NCBI RefSeq assembly: GCF_006345805.1
Contig: NC_042997.1
Span: 205,716,001-205,780,000 of the forward strand
DNA: 64,000 bases
Reading direction: 5' to 3'
DNA from: Octopus sinensis
Taxonomy: Eukaryota
Shown here: positions 1 to 60,789 of the stretch, piece after piece
Numbering within the stretch: position 1 is the stretch's first letter
How the letters are laid out: each line of letters starts with the position of its first letter
The notes under the pieces: generated by a model
Database searches by the model: none
The model's input: the letters and a program-made list of their open reading frames with translations, nothing else
Told to the model about the DNA's origin: nothing
Made by a program: the position numbers and the translations under genes

Positions 1-199
1 GGCCTCCATAACCATAACACAGTTTGGGGCCTGATACTTTTTTGGATTCTGTTTTCCAGGGCAACACATTTGAAGTTTTGCAGATGTCTTTATCCGGCAT
101 TATTTTCACATCATTTACTATAGTCTGACATTCTTCAGTGAGGGTCTGTAGAGATGAATCCTGGTTTGCTTGCTCCATTTTCAAAAGAATCCTTGCCTG
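1..199 (-). mobile_element. Gypsy gag remnant (duplicate of 54882-55079)
   Basis: Near-identical to the gag segment of the second copy. Confidence 0.75.
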
Positions 200-202
200 G
201 TA

Positions 203-420
203 AAAACTTTACCAGCAGGCATTCAGGAATGACTCAAAATTGTTAACAAATAGTGAGACAGAACTGGACAGCTTAATCCAGTCTGTGCAGATTTTTGTGA
301 ATGATATCAAGATGGAGTTTGGACTCTCAAAATGTGCTTCAGTGGTGATGAGACCAAGAAAGCTTGTCAGGACAGAAGGCATATGGATGTCATGTGGGGA
401 AATTTATAAAATGATTCCAG
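203..420 (+). mobile_element. RLE-type (R4/Dong-like) LINE RT fragment
   Basis: LDSLIQSVQIFVNDIKMEFGLSKCA resembles the post-YMDD motif FS.DI.M.FGL.KCA; longer version at 55940-56360. Confidence 0.7.
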
Positions 421-518
421 ATTCTTGTTTCTATTTTCTTCATTTCTTGCAGAATATGCTTTCGGTAAATTCCAAAAATATCAACATCAAACAACAAACA
501 ACAAAAACATCAACCAAC

Positions 519-746
519 CTTTGCTATTTCTCTGTCTTCTTCAGGTAAAACCACAAAGTAAACATCTTTGATCTGGCTTGAATTTTGATCTGAGTAGTTT
601 TTCACTGCTTCATACATTGTTCTGGGTAGTTTTCCAATGGGGTATTTCATTTCAGCCCCTAATATAGGAAATGCCAGGCTTTTTGCTCCCATTCTCTCAG
701 CAGTTTCCAGACAAGTGGTTATTACTTGAGTCAAGTTTGCCAGAAT
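519..746 (-). CDS. PARP14: PARP14-like gene, copy 1: macrodomain C-terminal half (internal exon)
   Basis: tttttag|ATT...AAG|gttggt, 228 nt, phase 0-0. ILANLTQVITTCLETAERMGAKSLAFPILGAEMKYPIGKLPRTMYEAVKNYSDQNSSQIKDVYFVVLPEEDREIAK matches the macro C-terminal pattern CL..A......S.AFP..G....YP....I..V.FV. Confidence 0.85.
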
Positions 747-1344
747 CTAAAAAAAATAATTGTTTAGTAATTGATAATGAACATTTTATTAAATTATTTT
801 CCAATTACAGGAAGAAACCATTAAGTTGTAATAAATATATCCTCCTCTCACTCTTACCACTTCTAAACACATCTGTCATTCCTATCACTCTTTCGTCCTG
901 CAAGAGACAAGGCAACCTCACTCATGATGCTGCTACAATAAAACAGACCCCATCCACCGTGTAAAATGGTTGGTGAATGAAGAGAGACAATGCAGACCCA
1001 AGAGGAGTCTTTAGTGTTGTTGAGGACATGACAACCTCTCTAGTGCTCGTGCCATGACAGAGAAAAACTCACCAATACAGACAGTAAAACACAGAAATAT
1101 GTTTTAATATAGTCTTATTTATCAGTCACATAACTGTTGTTAGGCCATGAGGCTTTTTTCCTTCTATTTATATATAAAAGTGTCCTGTTCATCGATATCT
1201 TCTGCTTCCTTCCAATGATAACTTGGAAGAACAAATATTAAACAGGATGCTGACATTTGCTTTATGATTCTCACACAACATGCATAAGGTTCCCTTCAAA
1301 CATTAACTGTTTCAATAAATCAATATAATATGATTGATACTTAC

Positions 1345-1572
1345 TGAATCAGAGGAATATTCATTCCAGTAAGGTAATGCCAGATGAAATACATTCTTAC
1401 AGTTGAGCTTATATGCTTTAGTGATGGCAATTTCAGATGTAGAAATACTTCGACGAAATTTCTGGTTACATTCATCTTGTATCTGTGGACCAGCAGCATT
1501 GAGAATAGATTTGGAGATAGCACCAATGTTAAGCCGGAGGCTTCTATTGGTGCTGTTAACGATGACATCAAC
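1345..1572 (-). CDS. PARP14: PARP14-like gene, copy 1: macrodomain N-terminal half (internal exon)
   Basis: ttttctag|GTT...TCA|gtaagt, 228 nt, phase 0-0, no stop codon. VDVIVNSTNRSLRLNIGAISKSILNAAGPQIQDECNQKFRRSISTSEIAITKAYKLNCKNVFHLALPYWNEYSSDS has the macro motifs DVIVN, GAxSKSIL-AAG, T-x-x-x-L-x-C-K-x-V-x-H. This frame is not in the ORF track. Confidence 0.88.
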
Positions 1573-1849
1573 CTAGAAAAGTAATTAATGGTAAACAGCA
1601 AAGGAACATTCCATGGAGAGAAAAGAGATACATTGTTGCAGTTGATATTGTTGTTAAGAAAGGCTCTTTCAGAATGGCTGTAGTAAGTTTGAGGTTGTTA
1701 AAGTTAGCAAAAGATATACTCAAGATATCAGATGTGAAGGAAATGTTTGAGTTTGATTGAGAAAATGTTTTAATTAACTGTAATGATACCTCATTTGGGA
1801 ATGAAATAACAATTAAACGTAAATATGTTAAGTGAATCTATTTACTCAC

Positions 1850-1986
1850 AGATGCATTAGAAATTGAATCAGTCGATAGTTGTATTTTGATGCCAGCATT
1901 TTCTCTGGATGTCTCATTAGTTCTGGGTGCCACAGAAGAGATTTCCTTTTGCGAAACATGAAGAGATGTTTTTGATGATGTGGTGT
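1850..1986 (-). CDS. PARP14: PARP14-like gene, copy 1: linker exon leading into macrodomain (internal exon)
   Basis: Minus strand tttttcag|AC...TCT|gtgagt, 137 nt, phase 1 in and phase 0 out. Translates (D)TTSSKTSLHVSQKEISSVAPRTNETSRENAGIKIQLSTDSISNAS; the ending IKIQL...I fits the first macrodomain strand, and it splices in frame to the next exon. Confidence 0.75.
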
Positions 1987-2099
1987 CTGAAAAAAATAAA
2001 CAAATATCAACATATGTACACTTTACACAGACACACACACACACACACACACTCATAAAGATATATATCATCATCATCATCATCATTTAACGTCTGTAT

Positions 2100-3523
2100 A
2101 TGTATTTCATTTTTGGATTTGGTTTGCAAGATTCTTTATGTGAGTTTGTGTGTTGAAGCATATTCTGTTGTGTCTGGGGAGAGTCATTTTCTTTTCGTGC
2201 CTTATAATTTAACACACTCACTGCCAAAAATTTCCACTTATTTCTCCTTTTTATTTTGTTCAAATTTTCGTTGCATCTTGCAAACTTTTCAATAGTCTTG
2301 ACTCTGTCCGTTATTTACACTGCGTTCCTTTTTGTTTGTTTGTGCACATGTGTGTGGGTCAGTGTGTGTGTGTGTCTATGCATGCATGTGTGTGTGTATG
2401 CATATGTATATATGCATGTTTGTGTGTGCATCTGTATGTATGTAATCTGCATATTCATGTGCTTGCATGTCCATGTTTGTGTATGTTTTATGTATGTGTG
2501 TATGTGAGAGTGTTTTTGTGTATGTATGCACCTCTCTCTCCTTGTGTGTGTGTGTGTGTGTGTTTTGCCACTTTGTACCATGTTTGTATATATGGATGGG
2601 CATTTCTATATGTGTGGACAAGTATCTCCTTATGTGTCCTTGTGTGGAGTAAAGCGTGTGTGTACATATGGTCTTGTGTTTCAGTATCCATTTGTGTATG
2701 TGTGCCTGTTTGTTCATATAAACTATGTACCTATCCATCTGTATGTTGATCTGTTTATTTTCACATCCATATGCTTACATACATGTGCATATACACATAT
2801 GTACCCACACACACACACACACATACATACATCTATCTACATAACAGCCCACTAACTATTCTACTCTACCTGTGTAAACTGTGGGTATGGGCGTATGGTA
2901 TCTACCATGTATATTTCCTATTTAGTATTAGGAAAGTTTCATTTATAAGGACGTACTCCCGTATTTGTCTGAGTGTTGGGTCTTTTGATTGCTTGGATGA
3001 GATGCAGATGTCAAGTTGACCCAAGTTGCCTCTATGGTGGTCTTTGGGATGTTGGTAGAGTATGGAGGACTGCTTTTTGTTGTCATATTGTCTCAAATGT
3101 TCATTTAGTCTTTCAGCTATGCTCCTAGATGTCTCCCCTACATACGTCATGTTCATGTCCTTACAGGCACCTTCTAAGCATCATATGCTGTAAACTACAT
3201 TTCGAGTTCTACAGTTAATGCCAGGGCTAATCCTACATACCATGCAGTTATCATTGGTGCATATGGTATTCTTAAAGGGGTACGTCCTACATAGTTATGA
3301 TCTGACGGAGTTCCCTGGCTTTTCAACAATCTTAATGTCGGGTTTGGTCTCCTTCAGAGCTTCCCTAAATCTACAGGCTAGTTCTCCATGGGATTTGGCC
3401 TCTACAAACATCACTCCTTCATATTTATCACTTTTCTGCCATGTGTTCACCCCGTTTGCTTTGTCACAAGAGCTTTGTATCCTATTCCATTCTTTGTTTC
3501 TATATCTAGGGCAGCTACCACTG
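2100..3523 (-). mobile_element. Penelope-like element, 3' part (GIY-YIG endonuclease, 3' UTR, terminal repeat)
   Basis: TYVGETSRSIAERLNEH...SSILYQH GIY-YIG motif; CA/GT-rich 3' region; same element at 58020-59613. Confidence 0.75.
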
Positions 3524-5589: not shown

Positions 5590-8500
5590 GCAAGACATCT
5601 CTCTCTGCTTCTTTATTTCTCTGTCACACTCTAACATTTCATCATCTACTACTGGATCACCTCCTCCAATGCCCTCTCTGCTATGGCAAGACCCCTCTTT
5701 CTGTCTCTCTGTCACACTCTAACATTTCATCATCTACTACTGGATCACCTCCTCCAATGCCCTCTCTGCTATGGCAAGACCCCTCTTTCTGTCTCTCTGT
5801 CACACTCTAACATTTCATCATCTACTTCTGGATCACTTCCTCCAATGCCCTCTCTGCTATGGCAAGACCCCTCTTTCTGTCTCTCTGTCACACTCTAACA
5901 TTTCATCATCTACTACTGGATCACCTCCTCCAATGCCCTCTCTGCTATGGCAAGACCCCTCTTTCTGTCTCTCTGTCACACTCTAACATTTCATCATCTA
6001 CTACTGGATCACCTCCTCCAATGCCCTCTCTGCTATGGCAAGACCCCTCTTTCTGTCTCTCTGTCACACTCTAACATTTCATCATCTACTACTGGATCAC
6101 CTCCTCCAATGCCCTCTCTGCTATGGCAAGACCCCTCTTTCTGTCTCTCTGTCACACTCTAACATTTCATCATCTACTACTGGATCACCTCCTCCAATGC
6201 CCTCTCTGTTATGGCAAGACCCCTCTTTCTGTCTCTCTGTCACACTCTAACATTTCATCATCTACTACTGGATCACCTCCTCCAATGCGCTCTCTGTTAT
6301 GGCAAGACCCTCTTTCTGTCTCTCTGTCACACTCTAACCTTTCATCATCTACTACTGGATCACCACCTCCAATGCCCTCTCTGTTATGGCAAGACCCCTC
6401 TTTCTGTCTCTCTGTCACACTCTAACATTTCATCATCTACTACTGGATCACCACCTCTAATGCCCTCTCTGTTATGGCAAGACCCCTCTTTCTGTCTCTC
6501 TGTCACACTCTAACATTTCATCATCTACTACTGGATCACATCCTCCAATGCCCTCTCTGTTACGGCAAGACCCCTATTTCTGTCTCTCTGTCACACTCTA
6601 ACATTTCATCATCTACTACTGGATCACCTCCTCCAATGCCCTCTCTGTTATGGCAAGACCCCTCTTTCTGTCTCTCTGTCACACTCTAACATTTCATCAT
6701 CTACTACTGGATCACCTCCTCCAATGCCCTCTCTGCTATGGCAAGACCCCTATTTCTGTCTCTCTGTCACACTCTAACATTTCATCATCTACTACTGGAT
6801 CACCTCCTCCAATGCCCTCTCTGTTATGGCAAGACCCCTCTTTCTGTCTCTCTGTCACACTCTAACCTTTCATCATCTACTACTGGATCACCACCTCCAA
6901 TGCCCTCTCTGTTATGGCAAGACCCCTCTTTCTGTCTCTCTGTCACACTCTAACATTTCATCATCTACTACTGGATCACCTCCTCCAATGCAATCTCTGT
7001 TATGGCAAGACCCCTATTTCTGTCTCTCCGTCACACTCGAACATTTCATCATCTACTACTGGATCACCACCTCTAATGCCCTCTCTGTTATGGCAAGACC
7101 CCTCTTTCTGTCTCTCTGTCACACTCTAACATTTCATCATCTACTACTGGATCACCTCCTCCAATGCCCTCTCTGCTATGGAAAGACCCCTCTTTCTGTC
7201 TCTCTGTCACGCTCTAACATTTCATCCTCTACTACTGGATCACCTCCTCCAATGCCCTCTCTGTTATGGCAAGACCCCTCTTTCTGTCTCTCTGTCACAC
7301 TCTAACCTTTCATCATCTACTACTGGATCACCACCTCCAATGCCCTCTCTGTTATGGCAAGACCCCTCTTTCTGTCTCTCTGTCACACTCTAACATTTCA
7401 TCATCTACTACTGGATCACCACCTCCAATGCCCTCTCTGTTATGGCAAGACCCCTCTTTCTGTCTCTCTGTCACACTCTAACATTTCATCATCTACTACT
7501 GGATCACCACCCCTAATGCCCTCTCTGTTATGGCAAGACCCCTCTTTCTGTCTCTCTGTCACAATCTAACATTTCATCATCTACTACTGGATCACCTCCT
7601 CCAATGCCCTCTCTGCTATGGCAAGACCCCTCTTTCTGTCTCTCTGTCACACTCTAACATTTCATCATCTACTACTGGATCACCTCCTCCAATGCCCTCT
7701 CTGTTATGGCAAGACCCCTATTTCTGTCTCTCTGTCACACTCTAACATTTCATCATCTACTACTGGATCACCTCCTCCAATGCCCTCTCTGCTATGGCAA
7801 GACCCCTCTTTCTGTCTCTCTGTCACACTCTAACCTTTCATCATCTACTACTGGATCACCACCTCCAATGCCCTCTCCGTTATGGCAAGACCCCTCTTTC
7901 TGTCTCTCTGTCACACTCTAACATTTCATCATCTACTACTGGATCACCACCTCCAATGCCCTCTCTGTTATGGCAAGACCCCTCTTTCTGTCTCTCTGTC
8001 ACACTCTAACATTTCATCATCTACTACTGGATCACCTCCTCCAATGCCCTCTCTGCTATGGCAAGACCCCTCTTTCTGTCTCTCTGTCACACTCTAACCT
8101 TTCATCATCTACTACTGGATCACCACCTCCAATGCCCTCTCTGTTATGGCAAGACCCCTCTTTCTGTCTCTCTGTCACACTCTAACATTTCATCATCTAC
8201 TACTGGATCACCACCTCCAATGCCCTCTCTGTTATGGCAAGACCCCTCTTTCTGTCTCTCTGTCACACTCTAACATTTCATCATCTACTACTGGATCACC
8301 TCCTCCAATGCCCTCTCTGCTATGGCAAGACCCCTCTTTCTGTCTCTCTGTCACACTCTAACCTTCCATCATCTACTACTGGATCACCACCTCCAATGCC
8401 CTCTCTGTTATGGCAAGACCCCTCTTTCTGTCTCTCTGTCACACTCTAACATTTCATCATCTACAACTGGATCACCACCTCCAATGCCCTCTCTGTTATG

Positions 8501-11500
8501 GCAAGACCCCTCTTTCTGTCTCTCTGTCACACTCTAACATTTCATCATCTACTACTGGATCAACTCCTCCAATGCCCTCTCTGTTATGGCAAGACCCCTC
8601 TTTCTGTCTCTCTGTCACACTCTAACATTTCATCATCTACTACTGGATCACCTCCTCCAATGCCCTCTCTGCTATGGCAAGACCCCTCTTTCTGTCTCTC
8701 TGTCACACTCTAACCTTTCATCATCTACTACTGGATCACCACCTCCAATGCCCTCTCTGTTATGGCAAGACCCCTCTTTCTGTCTCTCTGTCACACTCTA
8801 ACATTTCATCATCTACTACTGGATCAACTCCTCCAATGCCCTCTCTGTTATGGCAAGACCCCTCTTTCTGTCTCTCTGTCACACTCTAACATTTCATCAT
8901 CTACTACTGGATCACCTCCTCCAATGCCCTCTCTGCTATGGCAAGACCCCTCTTTCTGTCTCTCTGTCACACTCTAACATTTCATCCTCTACTACTGGAT
9001 CACCTCCTCCAATGCCCTCTCTTTTATGGCAAGACCCCTCTTTCTGTCTCTCTGTCACACTCTAACATTTCATCCTCTACTACTGGATCACCTCCTTCAA
9101 TGCCCTCTCTGCTATGGCAAGACCCCTCTTTCTGTCTCTCTGTCACACTCTAACATTTCATCCTCTACTACTGGATCACCTCCTCCAATGCCCTCTCTGT
9201 TATGGCAAGACCCCTCTTTCTGTCTCTCTGTCACACTCTAACATTTCATCCTCTACTACTGGATCACCTCCTCCAATGCCCTCTCTGCTATGGCAAGACC
9301 CCTCTTTCTGTCTCTCTGTCACACTCTAACATTTCATCCTCTACTACTGGATCACCTCCTCCAATGCCCTCTCTGCTATGGCAAGACCCCTCTTTCTGTC
9401 TCTCTGTCACACTCTAACATTTAATCATCTACTACTGGATCACCTCCTCCAATGCCCTCTCTGTTATGGCAAGACCCCTCTTTCTGTCTCTCTGTCACAC
9501 TCTAACATTTCATCATCTACTACTGGATCACCTCCTCCAATGCCCTCTCTGCTATGGCAAGACCCCTCTTTCTGTCTCTCTGTCACACTCTAACATTTCA
9601 TCATCTACTACTGGATCACCTCCTCCAATGCCCTCTCTGCTATGGCAAGACCCCTCTTTCTGTCTCTCTGTCACACTCTAACATTTCATCCTCTACAACT
9701 GGATCACCTCCTCCAATGCCCTCTCTGCTATGGCAAGACCCCTCTTTCTGTCTCTCTGTCACACTCTAACATTTCATCCTCTACTACTGGATCACCTCCT
9801 CCAATGCCCTCTCTGTTATGACAAGACCCCTCTTTCTGTCTCTCTGTCACACTCTAACATTTCATCATCTACTACTGGATCACCTCTTCCAATGCCCTCT
9901 CTGTTATGGCAAGACCCCTCTTTCTGTCTCTCTGTCACACTCTAACATTTCATCATCTACTACTGGATCACCTCCTCCAATGCCCTCTCTGCTATGGCAA
10001 GACCCCTCTTTCTGTCTCTCTGTCACACTCTAACATTTCATCATCTACTACTGGATCACCTCCTCCAATGCCCTCTCTGTTATGGCAAGACCCCTCTTTC
10101 TGTCTCTCTGTCACACTCTAACATTTCATCATCTACTACTGGATCACCTCCTCCAATGCCCTCTCTGTTATGGCAAGACCCCTCTTTCTGTCTCTCTGTC
10201 ACACTCTAACATTTCATCCTCTACTACTGGATCACCTCCTCCAATGCCCTCTCTGTTATGGCAAGACCCCTCTTTCTGTCTCTCTGTCACACTCTAACAT
10301 TTCATCCTCTACTACTGGATCACCTCCTCCAATGCAATCTCTGCTATGGCAAGACCCCTCTTTCTGTCTCTCTATCACACTCTAACATTTCATCATCTAC
10401 TACTGGATCACCTCCTCCAATGCCCTCTCTGCTATGGCAAGACCCCTCTTTCTGTCTCTCTGTCACACTCTAACATTTCATCATCTACTACTGGATCACC
10501 TCCTCCAATGCCCTCTCTGCTATGGCAAGACCCCTCTTTCTGTCTCTCTGTCACACTCTAACATTTCATCCTCTACTACTGGATCACCTCCTCCAATGAC
10601 CTCTCTGCTATGGCAAGACCCCTCTTTCTGTCTCTCTGTCACACTCTAACATTTCATCATCTACTACTGGATCACCTCCTCCAATGCCCTCTCTGTTATG
10701 GCAAGACCCCTCTTTCTGTCTCTCTGTCACACTCTAACATTTCATCATCTACTACTGGATCACCTCCTCCAATGCCCTCTCTGCTATGGCAAGACCCCTC
10801 TTTCTGTCTCTCTGTCACACTCTAACATTTCATCATCTACTACTGGATCACCTCCTCCAATGCCCTCTCTGCTATGGCAAGACCCCTCTTTCTGTCTCTC
10901 TGTCACACTCTAACATTTCATCCTCTACTACTGGATCACCTCCTCCAATGCCCTCTCTGCTATGGCAAGACCCCTCTTTCTGTCTCTCTGTCACACTCTA
11001 ACATTTCATCCTCTACTACTGGATCACCTCCACCAATGCCCTCTCTGTTATGGCAAGACCCCTCTTTCTGTCTCTCTGTCACACTCTAACATTTCATCAT
11101 CTACTACTGGATCACCTCTTCCAATGCCCTCTCTGTTATGGCAAGACCCCTCTTTCTGTCTCTCTGTCACACTCTAACATTTCATCATCTACTACTGGAT
11201 CACCTCCTCCAATGCCCTCTCTGTTATGGCAAGACCCCTCTTTCTGTCTCTCTGTCACACTCTAACATTTCATCATCTACTACTGGATCACCTCCTCCAA
11301 TGCCCTCTCTGCTATGGCAAGACCCCTCTTTCTGTCTCTCTGTCACACTCTAACATTTCATCATCTACTACTGGATCACCTCCTCCAATGCCCTCTCTGT
11401 TATGGCAAGACCCCTCTTTCTGTCTCTCTGTCACACTCTAACATTTCATCATCTACTACTGGATCACCTCCTCCAATGCCCTCTCTGTTATGGCAAGACC

Positions 11501-13645
11501 CCTCTTTCTGTCTCTCTGTCACACTCTAACATTTCATCATCTACTACTGGATCACCTCCTCCAATGCCCTCTCTGTTATGGCAAGACCCCTCTTTCTGTC
11601 TCTCTGTCACACTCTAACATTTCATCATCTACTACTGGATCACCTCCTCCAATGCCCTCTCTGTTATGGCAAGACCCCTCTTTCTGTCTCTCTGTCACAC
11701 TCTAACATTTCATCATCTACTACTGGATCACCTCCTCCAATGCCCTCTCTGTTATGGCAAGACCCCTCTTTCTGTCTCTCTGTCACACTCTAACATTTCA
11801 TCATCTACTACTGGATCACCTCCTCCAATGCCCTCACTGTTATGGCAAGACCCCTCTTTCTGTCTCTCTGTCACACTCTAACATTTCATCATCTACTGCT
11901 GGATCACCTCCTCCAATGCCCTCTCTGCTATGGCAAGACCCCTCTTTCTGTCTCTCTGTCACACTCTAACATTTCATCATCTACTACTGGATCACCTCCT
12001 CCAATGCCCTCTCTGTTATGGCAAGACCCCTCTTTCTGTCTCTCTGTCACACTCTAACATTTCATCATCTACTACTGGATCACCTCCTCCAATGCCCTCT
12101 CTGTTATGGCAAGACCCCTCTTTCTGTCTCTCTGTCACACTCTAACATTTCATCATCTACTACTGGATCACCTCCTCCAATGCCCTCTCTGTTATGGCAA
12201 GACCCCTCTTTCTGTCTCTCTGTCACACTCTAACATTTCATCCTCTACTACTGGATCACCTCCTCCAATGCCCTCTCTGGTATGGCAAGACCCCTCTTTC
12301 TGTCTCTCTGTCACACTCTAACATTTCATCATCTACTACTGGATCACCTCCTCCAATGCCCTCTCTGCTATGGCAAGACCCCTCATTCTGTCTCTCTGTC
12401 ACACTCTAACATTTCATCATCTACTACTGCATCACCTCCTCCAATGCCCTCTCTGCTATGGCAAGAACCCTCTTTCTGTCTCTCTGTCACACTCTAACAT
12501 TTCATCATCTACTACTGGATCACCTCCTCCAATGCCCTCTCTGTTATGGCAAGACCCCTCTTTCTGTCTCTCTGTCACACTCTAACATTTCATCATCTAC
12601 TACTGGATCACCTCCTCCAATGCCCTCTCTGCTATGGCAAGACCCCTCTTTCTGTCTCTCTATCACACTCTAACATTTCATCATCTACTACTGGATCACC
12701 TCCTCCAATTCCGTCTCTGTTATGGCAAGACCCCTCTTTCTGTCTCTCTGTCACACTCTAACATTTCATCCTCTACTACTGGATCACCTCCTCCAATGCC
12801 CTCTCTGCTAAGGCAAGACCCCTCTCTCTGTCTCTCTGTCACACTCTAACATTTCATCATCTACTACTGGATCACCTCCTCCAATGCCCTCTCTGCTATG
12901 GCAAGACCCCACTTTCTGTCTCTCTGTCACACTCTAACATTTCATCATCTACTACTGGATCACCTCCTCCAATGCCCTCTCTGCTATGGCAAGACCCCTC
13001 TTTCTGTCTCTCTGTCACACTCTAACATTTCATCATCTACTACTGGATCACCTCCTCCAATGCCCTCTCTGCTATGGCAAGACCCCTCTTTCTGTCTCTC
13101 TGTCACACTCTAACATTTCATCATCTACTACTGGATCACCTCCTCCAATGCCCTCTCTGCTATGGCAAGACCCCTCTTTCTGTCTCTCTGTCACACTCTA
13201 ACATTTCATCATCTACTACTGGATCACCTCCTCCAATGCCCTCTCTGCTATGGCAAGACCCCTCTTTCTGTCTCTCTGTCACACTCTAACATTTCATCAT
13301 CTACTACTGGATCACCTCCTCCAATGCCCTCTCTCCTATGGCAAGACCCCTCTTTCTGTCTCTCTGTCACACTCTAACATTTCATCATCTACTACTGGAT
13401 CACCTCCTCCAATGCCCTCTCTGCTATGGCAAGACCCCTCTTTCTGTCTCTCTGTCACACTCTAACATTTCATCATCTACTACTGGATCACCTCCTCCAA
13501 TGCCCTCTCTGCTATGGCAAGACCCCTCTTTCTGTCTCTCTGTCACACTCTAACATTTCATCATCTACTACTGGATCACCTCCTCCAATGCCCTCTCTGT
13601 TATGGCAAGACCCCTGTTTCTGTCTCTCTGTCACACTCTAACCTT
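5590..13645. repeat. Tandem array of an 88-bp unit, about 91 copies
   Basis: Unit GGCAAGACCCCTCTTTCTGTCTCTCTGTCACACTCTAACATTTCATCATCTACTACTGGATCACCTCCTCCAATGCCCTCTCTG(C/T)TAT; the ORF track repeats with exact 88-nt periodicity. Confidence 0.98.
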
Positions 13646-14182
13646 TTATCATCTGACACAAGCTCTCCTCATCAAATGCCTTGCCCCTCTCATAATTCAT
13701 TATCTTGGTGACCCTGCCAGCACTGGTGCCATGTAAAAAGCATCCACTGCACATTGTGAAATGGCTTGCATTTGGAAGGGCATCTAGCTGCAAAAATAAT
13801 GCCAAAACTAACTTTGTTGTGCTAGTTCCACGTAAAATGTACTGAGTCCACTCTGTTGAGTGGTTGGTGTTAGGAAGTGCATCCAGCTGTAAAATTCCTG
13901 CCAAAACAGACACAGTAGCGAAGGGTAGTTATTTTCCACCTTGCCGGCTCCTGTCAACTGTCCAATCCATGCATGCTTAGAAAACAGATGTTAAACGATG
14001 ATGATGATGATGTTGGCAGTGGTACTGGCAAACCTGCTGCAGCTGCACCTGATAACACAGGAACTTGAGGTAAACATGAATTCTGATCACGAACAGCCGA
14101 CGAGAGAGAAGAAACCCTACTCCGTATGGAATTACATGGTCAGTTCCACTGTGGAACCAACAAATTAAAAGACAAAGAAGCA

Positions 14183-14282
14183 NNNNNNNNNNNNNNNNNN
14201 NNNNNNNNNNNNNNNNNNNNNNNNNNNNNNNNNNNNNNNNNNNNNNNNNNNNNNNNNNNNNNNNNNNNNNNNNNNNNNNNNN
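14183..14282. other. Assembly gap (100 N)
   Basis: Run of exactly 100 N, the usual placeholder for a scaffold join of unknown size. Confidence 0.99.
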
Positions 14283-14679: not shown

Positions 14680-14877
14680 GAATATCTGTCTCGAATATGG
14701 GAGGAGATGAAGAGGGCAGAACGATATTGGTGTCAGGAGTCCCAACTGATTTCCGTTTGGAAGCCATTCAGTCTTATTTTGAGAACAAGAAGCGATCAAG
14801 TGGAGGACCTATTAAAGGAATCCAAGGACGGATCCAAGATTCTGGGGAAGTTATTATCACATTTGAATCGGAAAAAG
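14680..14877 (+). CDS. PARP14: PARP14-like gene, RRM1 exon (ATG at 14697 is the probable start)
   Basis: attttgcag| acceptor and GAAAAAG|gttag donor, phase 1 out. MGGDEEGRTILVSGVPTDFRLEAIQSYFENKKRSSGGPIKGIQGRIQDSGEVIITFESEK carries the YFEN-K/R-RS-GG signature of PARP14/PARP10-type N-terminal RRMs. Confidence 0.85.
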
Positions 14878-15569: not shown

Positions 15570-15995
15570 ATATATTTGTTGTGCAAGATTTTTGATGTGA
15601 AATCGTGTGTTGAAACAGATATTGTTGTATTTTGGAATGGTCATTTTGTCAGTTTAGCCAATAAAAACACACACACTATATATCAGCGTTATTTATTTTT
15701 TACATTAATCTTATTCTTATTTCAGCCAGAGTTCTATCATCACACTTCTGTGACCTCATCAGTGGACCTTTGCTTTCTTCTTTCTTATTTGTGTGTCTCT
15801 CCTTACTAACGGTCAGCCATTTTGTATTTTGTATTCCTATTGTATGTGTCTTCATTTGCACATGCGTATACCCCTATGTGTGTCTATGTTTAGTTAGTGT
15901 GTGTGTGGGGGGAGTGCCTGTAATATTTATATCGCCTGTTTATACACATTCATATAATTTGTTTTTGTTTATTTTGTTTATGTGTTTACACCTAC

Positions 15996-16035
<40 letters not shown>

Positions 16036-16610
16036 GTATAAGAATAATAATAATAATAATAATAATCATAATAATAAAAATGTATATAGTTATTTACTTC
16101 CATTTGTTTATTTATCTGTGTATTTTATCTTATTTATTATGTTTTCAGTTTTGTTTATATTGTAACCAGTTTATGGGGATCCTCTTCTGTCATATGTTGT
16201 GGTGTGTGCTAGTGTTCCATTCTAGTTTCCTATTCAGGCTAGGTTTATCTCCTATTATGTGTGTAGCTTCCGTAATTTGTCTGATTGTTGCGTCTGTTCT
16301 ATGTGTGGACAAGATTTTAACTTCTATGTTGTTGATTGAGCCCCTGTGTTCCTGCTCGGCATGTTGGTATAGAATCGATGAGCTCTTTCCTTCCTTAAGT
16401 TCTCTCCAATGTTTCATTTATCCGCTCTCCTATGCTCCATGCCATTTACCCTATGTACATCGTTGTCTTGTTACTGCATTGTCCCTCTATACATCTTATA
16501 CTATAGACTACATTTCTGGCTTTACAGTTTGTTTGTGGGCTAAATCTAGACACAGTACAGTTCCTATCTGTACAGGGGGTTCTACTAAAAGGGTAGGTTC
16601 TACTGATTAT
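15570..16610 (-). mobile_element. Penelope-like fragment (GIY-YIG C-terminal part)
   Basis: SSSILYQHAEQEH...TIRQITEA..I....PSLNRK is homologous to the 2902-3156 ORF. Confidence 0.7.
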
Positions 16611-20105: not shown

Positions 20106-20429
20106 TATGTGGGTGTTTTACCAATACCATAAGTCCACGTGTTTTCTCTTCAAATACTTTCAACAGCAACAACAATAAGAGACCTAGCCTCAACCTTGAT
20201 TCAATGTCAGTTGATGACCTACTTAATGAAACAGTCAGCTTTTCAGATTCCATTTGTTACCCAGCAACCAAATGTAAACAGTAGCAACAAGAATCACCAC
20301 AACAGTAACGATTACAGCTACAACAACTACATTACTGACCGTTCTACAGTACATGTGCATGCACACGTGTATACACACACACAGATATGCACATATGCGT
20401 TTGTAATTACCCATATGTTTTCACCTACC

Positions 20430-28134: not shown

Positions 28135-28269
28135 GTAAGTTTCTTCAAGTTTGATTTGTTCCGAAAAAGATTTCTTGAATTTTGTTTTGTTAATAGGATT
28201 GGTATATCTTTTATGTTTTAAATGTTTTAGTCTAATGACTCAGGCCATGCTGGGGCACCACCTTGAAGA

Positions 28270-29593: not shown

Positions 29594-29645
<52 letters not shown>

Positions 29646-52030: not shown

Positions 52031-54419
52031 AATCATTAATCATTAATAATTAATAATAATCATCATCATTATTTAGTGTCCGCTTTCCATGCTAGCATGG
52101 GTTGGACCGTTCAACTGGGGTCTGGGAAGCCAGAAGGCTGCACCAGGCCCAGTCTGATCTGGCAGTGTTTCTATTGCTGTATGCCCTTCCTAACGCCAAC
52201 CACTCCGTGAGTGTAGTGGCTGCTTTTACGTGCCACCGGCACAGGTGCCAGACGGGGCTGGCAAACAGCCACGGACAGATGGTGCTTTTTACGTCCACCG
52301 GCACAGGGGCCAGGCAAGGCTGGCAACGGCCAAGATCGGATTGTGCTTTTTATGTGCCACCAGCACGGAGGCCAGTCGGGGCGGTGCTGGCAACGGCCAC
52401 AGTCGGGTGGTGCTTTTATCGTGCCACCGGCAGGGAATGATAATAACATTAATCATATATAATAAACAGTGTTTAATAGAGACGGTGTGACAAAACACCA
52501 TAATATTCAATATCAACAAACAAATTGTTTACCTTTTGAATGAAATCTTTCCTTTTCCTGTTTATCCATCATTCCTTCATTTTCGGCTTTATTTTGGAGA
52601 TATTCTTCAAATTTCTGTAAAATTTAAAACCATGAGAATCATTTTTGTTTAATTTTTTGCTTTTTTTAAAGAGAAGAGATTTAATTTAACAAAAGACAAA
52701 CAAAATATTTAAAATATTTAATGATTTCTTTCTAATCAGTAATAAGGAAATGAGGAAAATTACTTTGTCACTCAGATCAAAGATATTCCATCCACGACCT
52801 TCCAGTCTACTGGGAGACATGGTATTGCAGTGGATGCGGCAGAAAAACCTTCCACACGAACCACTGATGTGGTGTTAGCGAAGTTAAACATGTGGCAATG
52901 GTGTCTTCATGTAGCTGAAGTTGTATTGTTTCTTCTCTCCACTCACAATTCTCATTAAAACTGCTGAGTCTTGTGTTTGCTGTTGAAATGTCTATCAAGA
53001 ATGTTGAAGTTGAGGTTCTTTGGTGCATCTTGTGTAGCCAAGAATATTTGAGCAACAAAAGCAGAGTACAAGGTAATTATTTTTTGATATTATAAGCAAG
53101 AAGGAGGAGGTGGAGGAGGTCCAACAATTAGGGTCATGGTCATTCATAAGAGAGATGACAAAGGAAAAGAAAGAACTTCAAAAACAGTTCTACAGTGGAC
53201 AGGAATTTCCCCTATTTCTTCATTACAGCATATGGACATAAAGAATGCCTTTGGTATTAACACTGCTTCTGTTGCTATTAATTATCTTTAATAAGCCTTC
53301 AGGCTATTTGTGACATCACTGTCTATATATCGTTGACAGGGAGATTTCGCTGTTATGTTGCTACAGGGTGTCTGTCACTGATGAACCTGAGCAGAGTGAA
53401 AATACATGATCTGGCAGTTCTGGTGCCTGTAGCAGATGACTGACATCTACCAACAAATAAATATGAGTGCCTTTATGGACCGTGCATCCATATGAGAGGT
53501 CCTCTCAAGGTAAATAAGGCAGTATTTGGTGTTCTAACACAACATCCACATTTAGTTGGATATAAAGATTGCTTTTGGTATTAATACTGCTTCTGATGCT
53601 ATTACTTTTAATTACCTTGATTTAGGTTCGGTCTCAATGTATGGCACCTTGAGCAAGTGTCTTTAACTATAGCCTTAGGCCAATCAAAGCTCTGTGATTG
53701 AGTCTGACAGGCAGTAAATGAGATAAGCCTGTCACACATATGTGTGTGTGTCTCCTTGCCTTTACATTATTTCTTAGCTGTAAACGAGTGTCCCTGTTAT
53801 GCAAGCAGTGTCCTTTGTTTCTAATAGTTTGTGATGTTTTGTAAAATGCAGAAATAGTTACCTCCCTTGGAACGAGGTGAGGGTTGGTGACAGAAAGGCG
53901 TCAAGCCATAGAATATCTAACTCCACAAATTCTATCGCACACGGGTGGTGGTGGTGGTGGTGGTGATGGAGATGAAGGTGATGAAGAGGATGTATTCTGT
54001 TCTCGTTACTTTTATTGTATTTTTTCAAAAGCTGTACTGTAATATCATCATCATCATCATCATAAATATATAAGAATGTATTTATGTGTGTCATTAGACA
54101 GAACCTAAAGCATTTTGTATTTGAGCCTCGATCTCTCCCCTCTTTCACATATAGGCCTCACCATGTTCTGCTGGGCTTTCTCCAATGGTGACGGGGAAAA
54201 TGCAAACAACTTTTGACAGAAAAATAAATTCAGTTGAGCTGCCCTTCCCCCACAAAATGGATGACAAAACAGGAAGAATAAACACGCTGGTCAACCGCAG
54301 TTAATGACATTTTGATTCATTTACTGCTTCTCTTAACACTCTTTTAAATAACACTTGCAGGAACATTTTTTTTCCAATTTTTCCTTCACTTCTTCTGTAG
54401 ACTTGTTTTTAACGTGACA

Positions 54420-55700
54420 ACCATTTATTTTATTGCAGTAAAGATTTACGGGGAAGTACCATAAATTGAATAGTTCTAGCCAATCTGTACCAAACAGATG
54501 AATAATTTTGCTTCACGTGTCTCTCCTCGGAATGTGACGTCGATACATGTTTTGTCCATCAAATGTAATCTGTCGCCCGTTACACCACATGCTATTTTCG
54601 CTGTTTTGCGTAATCTCAGTTTACCAATGTTTTCAAAGTATCTGCATTTATAATGAAGATGTCACTACCTGAGTCTAACTGTAACTTGGTATTCACATCA
54701 TTTATCTTTACATGCACGAATTTTCTTGTTTCTCAATCACAATCGATCTCCGCTGAAAACATCTTAGAACTTTTTGTATTTGAGCTTTGCTGTCTTGTTC
54801 TACAATGAGAACTCCTGTGTCCCAGCTTATGACAACTATAGCACTTTTTGTTTTTAAAAGGACAATCCTTTTCGTAGTGTAGGCCTCCATAACCATAACA
54901 CAGTTTGGGGCCTGATACGTTTTTGGATTCTGCTTTCCAGGTCAGCACATTTGAAGTTTTGCAGAGTCTTTATCCGCCATTATTTTCACATCATTTACTA
55001 TAGTCTGACGTTCTTCAGTGATGGTCTGTAGAGATGAATCCTGGTTTGCTTGCTCCATTTTCAAGAGAATCCTTGCCTGAATGTCTTCAAGTGCTATAAG
55101 TCCTTACATGAAGGTAAGTGATTTGAACATATCCTGAGTGAGATGCTGAAGTTTGAAATTTTCACACGTATGGCTGACTACTCCATTAAAGCGCTCAACA
55201 ATGAACTTTTACAAACAAAATTTTGAAAACAATTCCACGCTTTCTTGGAAATTAATCCCACTCAACTTTCTGGGCAGAATAAAGTTACAGTACTGCTCAT
55301 GTTTGGCAGGAGCTACCTTGTGTAGTGAAAGCCTTACTCCTCCTCTGACCGTGACTTGCACTCATTGTTAAAAATTTCCTCATATCTTCTATAATACACG
55401 GGAGACATAATATTCTCCTCTGGATTATACGTAAATTGTGTTAGCCGTGCCATCTGGCATAAACAATCTTACTGGACTTGCGGACTTCACTGACTGTAAA
55501 ACTCAATTACTGTTGTTGATGTTGTAGTATTTGTTTTTGCAGCTCTTGTGGTTGTCGCTGTTGCTTCTCTTGGAGCTATTTCCTGTGAAGTTTCAAACAA
55601 TCCTTGTTGCCAGATATGTTTATCCTCATGGATAAACAAATACACTGCAACAGTGTAATGAAAAACTGGCAGTATCCACGCAGAACATAACAACAATCCT
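54420..55700 (-). mobile_element. Degenerate Gypsy-type LTR retrotransposon: PBS-like site, gag, protease
   Basis: TGGCAACAAGG PBS-like motif at about 55602-55612; gag zinc knuckles CY..GGLHYEKDC and CYSCHKLGHRSSHC; aspartic protease motif LQLDSGSDI at about 54660-54690; stops and frameshifts. Confidence 0.75.
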
Positions 55701-56438
55701 TTAACAACCAACAAACCAACATGCTAACTCGATCTGTAAACTTTCAGCTCCAGCTTTGACTATCAACATATGAACTGTAGAACTAGCATGAATTGCCCTC
55801 CAACCCGAACTTCCACACTTATTCAGACCACTACTACTTTTTTATATATAGTGGCCCAGTCCATTCTCGCCAGGGGGCACTCTACTCTCACACAACAACA
55901 ACAATAATAATAATGATTGATAACATAATCTTGGACAGCAAGAACTAAAGAAATATAGGAGAGTAGCAAAACACATGAAAAGCTTTATATGGAAGAGTAT
56001 GGAAAGTACTGGCAGAGGTGGATATCAACAGAGGACTCTTCCAGGGGGACAGTGTGTCTCCACTGATTTTTTTTCACTGTGAATAAAACCCCTAAGTGAA
56101 AGACAGCAGCAGAAGACAAGTTGGGGTTGATGTGGGAAGAAAAGCGAAAACTTTACCAGCAGGCATTCAGGAATGACTCAAAATTGTTAACAAATAGTGA
56201 GACAGAACTGGACAGCTTAATCCAGTCTGTGCAGATTTTTGTGAATGATATCAAGATGGAGTTTGGACTCTCAAAATGTGCTACAGTGGTGATGAGACCA
56301 AGTAAGCTTGCCAGAACAGAAGGCATATGGATGTCATGCAGGGAAATTTATAAAATGATTCCAGATTCTTGTTTCTATTTTCTTCATTTCTTGCAGAATA
56401 TGCTTTTGGTAAATTCCAAAATATCAACATCAACCAAC

Positions 56439-56663
56439 CTTTGCAACCAAACCTCCACAAACAAACCATCTGAAACAAACTGCTTCTATCAGTAACATTG
56501 ATGCTTGAATTTTGATCTGAATAGTTTTTCACTGCTTCACATGTTCGGGTATTCCAATTATTCATTTCAGCCCCTAATATAGGAAATGCCAGGCTCTTTG
56601 CTCCCATTCTGTCAGCTTCTCCAGACAAATGGTTATTATTCGAGTCAAGTTTGCCAGAATAAT
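56439..56663 (-). pseudogene. PARP14: PARP14-like copy 2: disrupted macrodomain C-terminal exon
   Basis: Homologous to 519-746 but has a 1-nt deletion after TGTCTGGA (frameshift), deletions around the KYPIG and RTMYE segments, and a replaced 3' third. Confidence 0.8.
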
Positions 56664-57272
56664 CTAATAAAAATAATTGTTTAGTAATTGATAATGAACA
56701 TTTTATTAAATTATTTTCTTATTACAGGAAGAAACCTTTAAGTTGTAATAAATATATCCTCCTCTCACAACTCCTCTCACTCCTACCACTTCTAAACACA
56801 ACTGTCATTCCTATCACTCTTTAGTCCTGCAAGGGACAAGGCAACCTCAATCATGATGCTGCTACAATAAAACAGACCCCATCCACCATGTAAAATGGTT
56901 GGTGAATGAAGAGAGACAATGCAGATCCAAGAGGAGTCTTTAGTGTTGTTGAGGACATGACAACCTCTCTAGTGCTCGTCCATAACAGAGAAAAACTCAC
57001 CAATACAGACAGTAAAACAGAGAAATATGTTTTAATATAGTCTTATTTATCAGTCAAATAACTGTTGTTGGGCCATGAGGCTTTTTTCCTTCTATTTATA
57101 TATAAAAGTGTCCTGTTCATCGATATCTTCTGCTTCCTTCCAATGATAACTTGGAAGAACAAATATTAAACAGGATGCTGACATTTGCTTTATGATTCTC
57201 ACAAAACATGCATAAGGTTCTCTTCAAACATTAACTGTTTCAATAAATCAATATAATATGATTGATACTTAC

Positions 57273-57500
57273 TGAATCAGAGGAATATTCATTCCAGTAA
57301 GGTAATGCCAGATGAAATACATTCTTACAGTTGAGGTTATATCCTTTAGTGACGGCAATTTCAGATATAGAAATACCTCGAGAATATTCCTCGTTGCATT
57401 CATTTTGTATTTGTGGACCAGCAGCATTGAGAATAGATTTGGAGACAGCACCACTGTTAAGCTGGAGGCTTTTATTGGTGCTGTTAACGATGACATCAAC
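57273..57500 (-). CDS. PARP14: PARP14-like copy 2: macrodomain N-terminal half (paralog of 1345-1572)
   Basis: 228 nt, intact splice sites, open: VDVIVNSTNKSLQLNSGAVSKSILNAAGPQIQNECNEEYSRGISISEIAVTKGYNLNCKNVFHLALPYWNEYSSDS. Confidence 0.7.
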
Positions 57501-57781
57501 CTAGAAAAGTAATTGATGGTAAACAACGAAGGAACATTCCATGGAGAGAAGAGAGATACATTGTTGCAGTTGATATTGTTGTTAAGAAAGGCTCTATAGA
57601 ATGGCTGTAGTAAGTTTGAGGTTGTTAAAGTTAGCAAAAGATATACCCAAGATATCAGATGTGAAGGAAATAAAATGTTTGAGTTTGATTGAGAAAATGT
57701 TTTAATTAACTTTAATGATTCCTCATTTGAAAATGAAATAACAATTAAACGTAAATATGTTAAGTGAATCTATTTACTCAC

Positions 57782-57918
57782 AGATGCATTAGAAATTGAA
57801 TCAGTCGATAGTTGTATTTTGATGCCAGCATTTTCTCTGGATGTCTCATTATTTCTGGGTGCCACAGAAGAGATTTCCTTTTGCGAAACATGAAGAGATG
57901 TGTTTGATGATGTGGTGT
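57782..57918 (-). CDS. PARP14: PARP14-like copy 2: linker exon (paralog of 1850-1986)
   Basis: Same 137-nt exon with intact splice sites; 2 nt differences from copy 1, both non-synonymous (K/N, T/N). May belong to a pseudogene. Confidence 0.6.
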
Positions 57919-58019
57919 CTGAAAAAAACAAACAAATATCAACATATGTACACTTTATACACACACACACACACACACACACATATGTCATCATCATTTA
58001 ACGTCCGTATATGTATTTC

Positions 58020-59612
58020 ATGTTTGGATTTGGTTTGCAAGATTCTTTATGTGAGTTTGTGTGTTGAAGCATATTCTGTTGTGTCTGGGGAGAGTCATTT
58101 TCTTTTCGTGCCTTATAATTTAACACACTCACTGCCAAAATTTCCACTTATTTCTCCTTTTTATTTTGTTCAAATTTTCGTTGCATCTTGCAACCTTTTC
58201 AATAGTCTTGACTCTGTCCGTTATTTACACTGCGTTCCTTTTTGTTTGTTTGTGCGCATGTGTGTGGGTCAGTGTGTGTGTGTGTCTATGCATGCATGTG
58301 TGTGTGTATACATATGTATATATGTATGTATGTGTGTGCATCTGTATGTATGTAATCTGCATATTCATGTGCTTGCATGTCCGTGTTTGTGTATGTTTTA
58401 TGTATGTGTGTATGTGAGAGTGTTTTTGTGTATGTATGCACCTCTCTCTCCTTGTGTGTGTGTGTGTGTGTGTATGTATGGATGTGCATTTCTATATGTG
58501 TGGACACGTATCTCCATATGTGTCCTTATGTGGAGTATTTGTCTGAGTGTTGGGTCTTTTGATTGCTTGGATGAGATGCAGATGTCAAGTTGACCCAAGT
58601 TGCCTCCATGATGGTCTTTGGGATGTTGGTAGAGTATGGAGGACTGCTTTTTGTTGTCATATTGTCTCAAATGTTCATTTAGTCTTTCAGCTATGCTCCT
58701 AGATGTCTCCCCTATGTACGTCATGTTCATGTCTTTACAAGCACCTTCAAAGCATTCTATGCTATAAATACATTTCGAGTTCTACAGTTAATGCCAGGGC
58801 TAATCCTACATACCATGCAGTTATCATTGGTGCATATGGTATTCTTAAAGGGGTACGTCCTACATAGTTATGATCTGACGGAGTTCCCTGGCTTTTCCAC
58901 AATCTTAATGTCGAGTTTGGTCTCCTTCAGAGCTTCCCTAAATCTACAGGCTAGTTCTCCATGGGATTTGGCCTCTACAAACATCACTCCTTCATATTTA
59001 TCACTTTTCTGCCATGTGTTCACCCCGTTTGCTTTGTCACAAGTGCTCTGTATCCTATTCCATTCTTTGTTTCTATATCTAGGGCAGCTACCACTGGTAT
59101 CATTACGTATAATGTTATCAGATTTATTTCTAGCACCCCTGTACACTCGAACTCTATCTTTTTGATCATATCCAGAGAACTGCATGCGGTGCATAAAGTT
59201 CTGTATGTGTTTTGTCGTTTCATAGGGTTCGCATAGTGGGGACACATTGTTCATTATTCTAATTAAGTCTGCTATCAGTATGGTTTAATTTCCATGTTGT
59301 GTGAGAAAGGTGAGTTCTTGTGAACGACATAGTTTGAAGTTATGGGTTCCATGTAATAAGAGTGGAGGAGCTGCACTCTTTTGTTCACAGTCTCTAACCC
59401 AAGTTCAGTATCAAGTACAGGGAGTCCATTGTTGGGGTGCTTAGTGGGGTTTAATCTATAGTTACCTTGATACTTTGGTGGATGGAGTTAGCTATTTGCT
59501 GGAGGCTCTCCATTACGTTCTTCTCAGTTTCTACATTAAGCGGACATTTCACCGGTGAGTGTGTAAAATTATAAGGCACAAAAAGAAAATGACCCTCCCC
59601 CGAGACACAACA

Positions 59613-59653: not shown

Positions 59654-60789
59654 CAACAGTAACTTCAAAAACCAGCCAACCATACACTTAACGCTTTACC
59701 AGTCTGGGGTGCACATAGGCCAAATTGACTAAATCATTAGTTTTATTTTGATGCCATCATATTTTCTGGATGTCACTTTAGTTCTGGGTGTCATAGAGGA
59801 CGATTCCTGTTGAGGACTAAGAAGGTCTGATGGTTTGGTTCCTGAAAATTAACAAATATAAACATACATACATACACACACACAAACATACACATTTTCA
59901 ATCATAAAGTCTGCTCTATTCTTTAGATTGTGCTTCTCATTCTGATATATGTTATATTGATAATTCATATATATATATATATATCTTAGCTGGGCATAAG
60001 AACCATCAGATGTGGTGTACAAGAGAGACAACTGCACACGACATCTGAAGAAGTTCCAATCTCTACCAGTGGGAGGAAGCTGTAGAAGAGGGAGGCCCAG
60101 GAAGACATGGAATGAGGTGCTTAAGCATAATCATCAAATGATGGGCCATATGGAAGCAATGACTAGTGACCGAGACATTTGGCGATATGTCATACTTGAG
60201 AAGACATATGGTCAAGGAATATGGCGACCTGGCAGCTGGAGTCTTAGAGTAGCTGTCCACCGAAGTTCCATATAATATGGGAAGGAAAAAGGAAAAGGAG
60301 GAAAATACAATGTTACTAAAACAAAGACACATTCACATGTAGACAAACAAATGGTTTGATTAGAGTATAATCAATTTGGCGAGGAAACTAAAGAGAAAAT
60401 ATTACGACGATGACCACCACAGATCTACAATGGAAGAATTCACCACGTGTAGTTGAGGGTAAAAGAAAACGTTGAACGACAGTAAGTACGTCCAAAATTT
60501 ATAAAGCAGTGACATACATACATACATAGATACTTGTAGCAGACATGTATATACGTGCAGAGTGAAAAGAAATCACACTATTTAATGTGACGGAGTACAC
60601 TGCAAAAAATTAAAAAATCACTGATTTCATTTCTGTTTACAAACTTTCTCCGTGTCTACACTAAACATACGCACAAATCCTTTTATATATACACACGCAA
60701 TATTTAAGAACAAAAGGAATATACACAAAAAAAGAACGAATTAAAAACAAATATTTTATATTTTACTTTTATCGTATTGTTGTTTACAT

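Follow-up and report, generated by a model that had tools for sequence, protein, structure and literature searches.

Why does one short exon of a recently duplicated gene module differ more between its two copies than the introns on either side of it? This question is raised by a stretch of 64,000 nucleotides (nt) of the Octopus sinensis genome (contig NC_042997.1, positions 205,716,001 to 205,780,000; the whole stretch is referred to as the window), in which two exon copies encode the N-terminal half of a macrodomain of PARP14 type. The initial annotation tentatively ascribed the divergence of these copies to diversifying selection in an ADP-ribosylation immune system. Our analysis confirms the excess of differences in the exon over the surrounding DNA and partly supports that interpretation. 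Across the octopus family, a few codons of the N-terminal exon do evolve under diversifying selection, independently of the two window copies. The divergence of the pair itself forms a short patch, which we tentatively attribute to segment exchange between members of a tandem array, with adaptive change in place as a close rival.

A multi-copy octopus array, built from modules resembling PARP14 macrodomain 2, is represented in the window by two tandem units. These duplicated recently and have a neutral divergence of 2.8%. Each unit comprises a linker exon and two macrodomain exons (Table 1), and copy 1 is open across its three visible exons. Searching the window by tblastn returns just these two macrodomain copies, plus a decayed third linker exon.

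Divergence of the exon pair and selection across the family

Copy 1 (1345-1572) and copy 2 (57273-57500) are both minus-strand exons of 228 nt with AG...GT boundaries, and frame 0 reads VDVIVNSTN...NEYSSDS. They differ at 17 of the 228 nt, all within exon nt 29-165, and these differences change 14 amino acids (codons 10, 13, 16, 19, 33, 37, 38, 39, 40, 42, 45, 50, 53, and 55). By the method of Nei and Gojobori, 15 differences are non-synonymous and two are synonymous (N = 177.7 and S = 50.3 sites), which gives a dN of 0.090, a dS of 0.041, and a ratio of 2.2. The residue list yields a net charge of +5 for the copy 1 exon. For the numbers of differences, the charge, and the confinement of the amino-acid changes to codons 10-55, the recount agrees with the initial annotation.

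The surrounding DNA was compared by global alignment of the duplicated block (window 200-3523 versus 56144-59096). Intron 2 differs at 17/597 nt and intron 1 at 10/275, so that the earlier figure of about 3% for the flanks stands, while the linker exon differs at 2/137. The upstream segments (15/553 and 14/562) and a retrotransposon fragment (7/273) are similar, and the non-coding DNA of the block as a whole differs at 63/2260 nt (2.8%). This divergence is uniform, ranging from 2.5 to 3.6% per segment. Compared with the introns, the exon shows a clear excess of differences (Fisher p = 0.004), and the excess is sharper against all non-coding DNA of the block (Fisher p = 7e-4, binomial 3e-4). 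The binomial check that had been proposed for the exon and intron divergence thus finds a real excess, and it is carried by the amino-acid changes: non-synonymous sites (15/178) exceed the non-coding DNA (p = 4e-4), whereas synonymous sites (2/50) do not differ from it (p = 0.41). The pairwise ratio of 2.2 is itself not significantly greater than 1 (Fisher p = 0.38).

Selection was examined in eight family copies with our own codon likelihood program of the Goldman-Yang type (F3x4, neighbour-joining topology, all branch lengths optimised). Besides the two window copies, the set consists of L001a, L002, L004, and L005 from O. sinensis, L006 from O. vulgaris, and L003 from O. bimaculoides. For the N-terminal macrodomain exon, M0 gives an omega of 1.53, and M2a improves on M1a by a likelihood ratio test (LRT) statistic of 31.8, with 15% of sites in a class of omega2 = 7.3. 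Tests of this type are inflated by recombination and by multi-nucleotide changes, and our code contains no recombination model. The linker exon reaches an omega of 1.41 and an LRT of 5.0, the C-terminal macrodomain exon an omega of 0.58 and an LRT of 0.4, and all three exons together an omega of 1.02 and an LRT of 30.2. Among 24 parametric bootstraps under the fitted M1a, the largest LRT was 9.0, and the simulated parameters were recovered. A further caveat is that about 60% of sites behave as neutral.

Removal of the two window copies leaves the LRT of the N-terminal exon at 30.5, with codons 11, 22, 25, 29, 33, and 68 as the selected sites. The claim of diversifying selection therefore holds for the family, where the site model supports it with and without the window pair. 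It is not supported for the pair taken alone, as neither the pairwise ratio nor the omega of 2.41 on the combined tip branches of copies 1 and 2 is significantly above 1 (LRT 1.6 for the branches). Nor are the changes of the pair recurrently selected sites: codon 33 is the only one of the 14 changed codons that belongs to the set selected without the window copies, and several of the changes hit positions that are invariant in the family.

A short patch, a pseudogene, and mosaic exons

A two-rate change-point scan for a high-divergence block is fitted best by window 1408-1483, where 13 of 76 nt differ (17%). The log-likelihood gain for this block is 12.4, compared with 5.2 for a block bounded by the exon. 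The 17 differences of the exon fall within 137 nt and none in the remaining 91 nt (P = 0.003, a value that rests on about 30% of family differences falling in those 91 nt). Seven differences are clustered within 16 nt, and three more are found among the final 28 nt of the intron upstream. From this geometry, we infer that the excess is a short patch with a core of 76 nt and a total extent of at most about 190 nt. A quasi-palindrome or template-switch origin of the 16-nt cluster fitted poorly by eye and was dropped.

Inside the core, the two copies lose their sister relationship. They are separated by 13 differences, the family median being 10 and the smallest value 5, and both L006 and L002 are nearer neighbours of copy 1 than copy 2 is. 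Outside the core, the copies are identical or nearly so, both in the remainder of the exon and in the linker exon. Polarisation against the six other genomic copies assigns seven derived states to copy 1, all non-synonymous, and six to copy 2, of which four are non-synonymous and two synonymous. Four sites remain ambiguous, and at all four the base of copy 2 is that of paralog L004. Moreover, both copies share states at exon nt 32, 122, and 144, within the 137-nt patch, that are unique among the eight genomic copies compared. Copy 1 departs from the family at Y39F, P40R, G42S, and G53A, positions that are invariant in the other 11-12 members, while copy 2 departs at the invariant I19V and P40S as well as at the nearly invariant Q37 and K38.

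Damage to its C-terminal macrodomain exon, in the form of a frameshift, deletions, and partial replacement, makes copy 2 a pseudogene. The loss of 1 nt shifts the frame and leads to a stop, and deletions of 5 and 7 nt and an insertion of 10 nt are also present. Further, some 60 nt at the 3′ end resemble none of the copies compared, whereby the conserved VYFVV strand is lost; no match to this replaced end was found in the window or in the six loci L001-L006. Of the changes in this exon, 37 are derived in copy 2 and two in copy 1. Since the introns flanking it are clean, being 97% identical to those of copy 1, a complex local event is likelier than slow decay. Consequently, the exon pair does not represent divergence between two working paralogs. 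The segment replacement at 56439-56560 (minus strand) recalls the segment switches in snake-toxin exons, but it breaks the reading frame.

The exon-intron contrast is a property of the whole family, whose introns align cleanly with those of the window. At best, non-coding DNA of the window is 88-92% identical to the O. sinensis and O. vulgaris loci, and a value of 98.9% is reached only in a repeat-like flank of 470 bp. Within the group formed by the O. sinensis, O. vulgaris, and window copies, the introns differ by 0.040, while the proportions of differences at synonymous (pS) and non-synonymous (pN) sites are 0.145 and 0.137. The corresponding values against O. bimaculoides are 0.082, 0.126, and 0.130. 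Family exons are thus about 3.5 times (3-4) more diverged than introns, at synonymous and non-synonymous sites alike. Intron trees place the O. bimaculoides copy L003 as the outgroup, whereas exon trees nest it inside, and the exon trees are star-like and differ among the three exons. L003 and the O. sinensis copy L004 share multi-nucleotide motifs, including a synonymous change. The PHI (pairwise homoplasy index) test gives p = 0.018-0.034 in the exons, with few copies.

A mosaic pair is also seen at a single O. sinensis locus, where L001a is accompanied by L001b, an extra decayed fragment. The linker exon differs between them at 28/137 nt (20%), whereas the intron beside it (9/274) and the exon after that (9/226) have diverged by only 3-4% (p = 1e-6). 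The pair occupies L001 4860-5611 and 13774-14521, and its shorter copy carries a stop and frameshifts.

On these sequence comparisons, the simplest reading is that the backbone of the array would be homogenised within species, while exon segments would be older, retained, and exchanged. The observation that the exon evolves faster than the intron would then largely be a signature of intron homogenisation and segment exchange, and not in itself one of adaptive change, because synonymous sites also exceed introns three- to fourfold and because introns track the species while exons do not. A rise in mutation rate targeted purely to exons is disfavoured, as exon distances between species are not larger than those within the group. 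Among singletons of the window copies, L002, L003, L005, and L006, exons show 25 sense-strand A-to-G against 8 T-to-C changes, compared with 14 and 15 in introns, and G/C transversions are enriched in exons (16 versus 2). This exon singleton bias may stem from amino-acid selection or be linked to cephalopod A-to-I editing.

Segment exchange or adaptive change in place

We tentatively favour an origin of the patch by short-tract gene conversion or segment exchange between array members, under diversifying selection. This reading is suggested by the geometry of the patch, by the lost sister relationship in its core, and by the changes at conserved residues, and also by the facts that copy 2 is a pseudogene and that the family exons are mosaic. 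The exchange process would be the one that makes the family exons mosaic, with decayed copies possibly among the donors, and the donor of the patch would be an unsampled array member. Such a segment would bring with it the amino-acid-biased divergence typical of the family, so that some 15 independent adaptive substitutions since the duplication need not be assumed. In line with this, the 15:2 ratio of the pair and its tip-branch omega do not differ from the family background for the N-terminal exon (1.43; LRT 0.46).

The initial annotation had named a conversion tract from an older third paralog as a result that would overturn the selection hypothesis, and conversion is indeed the reading that we tentatively favour. 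Within the patch, the copies are as unlike each other as unrelated paralogs. A single tract from a distant paralog was nevertheless rejected, because the copies share the unique states at nt 32, 122, and 144 and because no sampled copy matches either haplotype. As both copies carry unique states of their own in addition to these three, any donor has to be a close, unsampled member of the subfamily.

Several observations weigh against exchange. No donor of either patch haplotype was found among the six other genomic copies or the 12 annotated proteins, and the best global p of our own GENECONV-like test is 0.057, again with few copies. Copy 1 carries seven and copy 2 six unique states in the patch. 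The synonymous divergence of the pair lies at the intron level, as expected for selection acting in place. Finally, the sample is small, with eight copies from at least three species.

Positive selection in place after the duplication is a close rival to exchange, and we consider it somewhat unlikely. It would have driven adaptive replacements, in either or both of the copies, in the loop after VIVNSTN and in the helix and surface segment that follow, before copy 2 was disabled. Such a course is consistent with the rate contrast reported above, in which non-synonymous sites outpace the 2.8% of the non-coding DNA while synonymous sites keep to it, with seven of seven polarised changes on the copy 1 lineage being non-synonymous, and with the strongly significant, bootstrap-calibrated M2a test of the N-terminal exon. 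Moreover, subfamily-specific states are still shared inside the patch for which no donor is found, and vertebrate macro-PARP macrodomains evolve likewise (PMC4038475). However, the pairwise and branch estimates of omega do not exceed 1 significantly, and the M2a statistic is subject to the inflation mentioned above. An omega of about 6-7 would be required on both lineages, in about 25 codons and within a short time, even though copy 2 is a pseudogene. The sites also fit poorly, since the overlap with the independently selected set is limited to codon 33, and since Y39, P40, G42, and G53 in copy 1 and I19 and P40 in copy 2, all invariant in other members, are altered.

These hits at invariant residues would equally follow from lost constraint in a decaying subfamily, combined with a mutation hotspot or with one or two complex repair events, an explanation that we judge improbable. 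Copy 2 is broken, and the complex rearrangement of its C-terminal exon between clean flanks shows that such events occur here. Additionally, the second glycine-rich loop has lost one codon and carries Glu in place of Gly in copies 1, 2, and L006 alike, and seven differences crowd into 16 nt. Relaxed constraint alone, however, cannot surpass the neutral rate, and the patch diverges at about six times that rate. Furthermore, the clustered changes are split and interleaved across two lineages, so that independent hits at the same spot would be needed, and the frames of copy 1 are open with canonical splice sites in all three exons.

An assembly artefact, be it a chimeric consensus in a tandem array or mis-scaffolded haplotypes, is very improbable: the copies do lie on different contigs of the scaffold (with 100-N gaps at 14183-14282 and 48745-48844), and the end of the first contig does overlap the start of the third with 4/583 differences outside the satellite, but the exon differences are all substitutions and not the insertions or deletions typical of consensus errors, several of the states recur in independent assemblies of other species, the non-coding divergence is an even 2.8% over 3.3 kb, and the right-hand flanks of the two copies differ, so that these are not simple alleles.

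Under either of the two leading readings, exchange or selection in place, the root phenomenon is family-wide, as even the donor of a conversion must have acquired its amino-acid-biased divergence somewhere. The divergence of the pair is suggestive of an immune-style arms race, not proof of it.

Domain identity, surroundings, and related gene families

When joined, the three exons of copy 1 (1850-1986, 1345-1572, and 519-746) encode a complete macrodomain, with 1345-1572 as its N-terminal half. The joined sequence matches the Pfam Macro profile (PF01661) with E = 3.3e-19 and 69.4 bits (cut-off 22) over profile positions 1-106 of 118. Among solved structures, human PARP14 macrodomain 2 comes closest (3q71, 5o2d, and the second domain of 3vfq; E = 1e-21 to 1e-39), ahead of macrodomain 1 (3q6z) and macrodomain 3 (4abk). 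Database relatives comprise 12 proteins with 62-78% identity from O. sinensis, O. vulgaris, O. bimaculoides, or unnamed transcript sets. Most are short (114-311 residues), are named PARP14-like by NCBI, and have Macro as their sole Pfam match. The assignment to a PARP14-like macrodomain family made in the initial annotation is therefore upheld by the Pfam match (E = 3e-19), by the best solved relative, and by the multi-copy octopus family that bears this name.

Loop 1, which follows the NxxN strand, is present but variable. In the glycine-rich loop 2, copy 1, copy 2, and L006 of O. vulgaris (47404-47628) read GA-EM, as opposed to GAGxL in the family and GTGNL in human macrodomain 2. The difference to the family motif amounts to the one-codon deletion and the Gly-to-Glu change common to these three copies. 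Judged from the motif, this difference may change or abolish ADP-ribose binding in the subfamily. An AlphaFold2 model built from an alignment of 12 sequences is poor (mean predicted local distance difference test score, pLDDT, of 52). The O. vulgaris gene model P0011 at L006 joins the N-terminal macrodomain exon straight to a C-terminal tail exon. This model omits a seemingly intact C-terminal macrodomain exon and places a different macrodomain, of macrodomain 1 type, upstream.

Two further exons, putatively of PARP14 type, belong to the scaffold's middle contig and run in the opposite direction to the macrodomain copies. Window 31857-32081 (plus strand) and 14709-14867 (plus strand) match the RNA recognition motif (RRM) profile RRM_PARP14_3 at 25.0 and 23.8 bits, with a gathering score of 24. 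The putative RRM region at window 28192-32744 is 92% identical to positions 15727-20200 of the O. sinensis locus L007, and the gene model enclosing those positions includes Macro and PARP domains. Used as a protein query, the candidate RRM exon retrieved a single match. No PARP catalytic or WWE exon was found beside the two macrodomain copies by Pfam in the family proteins or in the few window open reading frames scanned, the scan of the window being non-exhaustive.

Table 1. Macrodomain features of the window, with positions counted from its first nucleotide
Feature	Position	Strand	Description
Copy 1, macrodomain N-terminal exon	1345..1572	-	228 nt, phase 0, open; AG/GT and translation, tblastn with family proteins, Pfam Macro match
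Copy 2, macrodomain N-terminal exon	57273..57500	-	Open reading frame; 17 differences from copy 1
Copy 1, linker exon	1850..1986	-	137 nt; ends with first macrodomain strand (GIKIQLSTDSISNAS); splice sites read by sequence, tblastn
Copy 2, linker exon	57782-57918	-	Counterpart of copy 1 linker exon, 2/137 differences
Copy 1, macrodomain C-terminal exon	519..746	-	Intact, ILANLTQ...EIAK; phosphate loop GA-EM versus family GAGxL
Copy 2, macrodomain C-terminal exon remnant	56439..56663	-	Frameshifted, rearranged
Core high-divergence patch, copy 1	1408..1483	-	Exon nt 90-165, codons 30-55; copy 2 counterpart 57336-57411
Duplicated block, copy 1 side	1..3523		Extends past the left end of the window; self-BLAST blocks 1-199, 203-495, 576-2563, 2961-3523
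Duplicated block, copy 2 side	54882..59096		About 1.07 kb extra at 55080-56146; self-BLAST and global alignment
Candidate next (C-terminal) exon of copy 2 unit	52516..52617	-	QKFEEYLQNK...KGKQFVC; tblastn with P0011
Third linker-exon copy, decayed	59723..59854	-	Upstream of copy 2; self-BLAST 76% identity; in-frame stop, KLMI*SI by tblastn

An 88-bp satellite occupies 5618-13654 (91 copies) and 48845-50684 (21 copies) with a 97% match and abuts both scaffold gaps. Outside this satellite, the flank 13600-14182 differs from 50630-51212 at 4/583 nt, and the first contig may therefore end in the very locus with which the third begins. In that case, the two macrodomain copies are neighbouring units, and the placement or orientation of the 34-kb middle contig may be wrong. 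Two other satellites are a 115-bp repeat (34 copies, 44838-48744), which ends at a gap, and a 58-bp repeat (17 copies, 22266-23265). Pieces of retrotransposons without long terminal repeats (non-LTR) lie at 37325-38716 (minus strand), 61979-62806 (plus), 23393-23935 (plus), and 203-495 and 56147-56438 (plus). They include a reverse-transcriptase reading frame (RVT_1), an endonuclease reading frame (Exo_endo_phos), and a zinc-binding reverse-transcriptase match below threshold. By eye, a fragment resembling reverse transcriptase, with no Pfam match, is present in the intron downstream of both macrodomain copies. A dispersed repeat with LQLDALPNxNHS-like reading frames occurs at least eight times. 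The Rfam scan of the window returned no match.

In vertebrates, positive selection has acted recurrently on the macrodomains of PARP9, PARP14, and PARP15, and these genes have been gained and lost repeatedly (Daugherty et al, 2014, PMC4038475; reviewed in PMC13224862). The octopus array resembles these macro-PARPs in its domain type, the nearby candidate RRM exons of PARP14 type, tandem duplication with pseudogenes, and site-model diversifying selection. In contrast, the octopus family members are short and Macro-only by Pfam, and no catalytic or WWE exon was seen beside the copies in the non-exhaustive scan described above. Moreover, selection is deduced among paralogs instead of orthologs, and the divergence of the exons goes together with homogenised introns.

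Conserved introns and hypervariable exons characterise the multigene families of snake toxins and venoms, where the process has been termed “accelerated segment switch in exons” (PMC2474615, PMC2711939, PMC6062510). The octopus family is similar in that introns are several-fold more conserved than exons, including synonymous sites, in that omega lies near or above 1, and in that short segments are replaced. Unlike a secreted toxin, the octopus domain is an ADP-ribose reader of intracellular type, and the replacement in copy 2 destroys the frame without retargeting. Cone-snail toxin genes behave like the snake venom families.

A second parallel is offered by the class I and II genes of the major histocompatibility complex (MHC), in which introns are homogenised and exon diversity is maintained. 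Gene conversion templated by pseudogenes is known from chicken immunoglobulin V genes and from CYP21A2/CYP21A1P. As in MHC-type families, the octopus introns cluster by species and the exons do not, motifs cross species, exons are mosaic, and decayed copies are potential donors. The octopus pattern differs in occurring between paralogs and not alleles, in recombination tests that are marginal with few copies, and in the lack of a donor among the copies compared. Outside vertebrates, clustered PARP14-like duplicates are known from amphioxus and sponges, as far as a review relates (Perina et al, 2014, cited in PMC13224862), and the octopus likewise shows a lineage-specific tandem expansion. Our literature search found no paper on a PARP14-like expansion in cephalopods, and the PARP14 review (PMC13224862) covers neither cephalopods nor the contrast between exons and introns.

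By analogy with these systems, the array might act as a germline generator of diversity in ADP-ribose reader modules, providing a repertoire of binding surfaces against viruses or parasites. Conserved introns would serve as recombination substrates that shuffle short hypervariable exon segments, and pseudogene copies would act as donors. This proposal is speculative and decidedly improbable. If true, it would represent an invertebrate analogue of receptor diversification by pseudogene-templated conversion.

Cephalopod innate immunity is poorly known. Fast evolution and turnover of macro-PARPs are a recognised mark of host-virus conflict in vertebrates. As a caution, when young duplicates of such an array differ more in an exon than in its introns, this is not by itself evidence of adaptive change. 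The family-wide pattern has three parts, namely variable mosaic exons, homogenised introns, and a few codons, located in the ligand-side half of the domain, whose omega greatly exceeds 1. Should it hold with complete catalogues of copies, the array would offer a manageable system in which to tell selection and gene conversion apart in tandem arrays, and ADP-ribose recognition would emerge as a contested interface in cephalopods.

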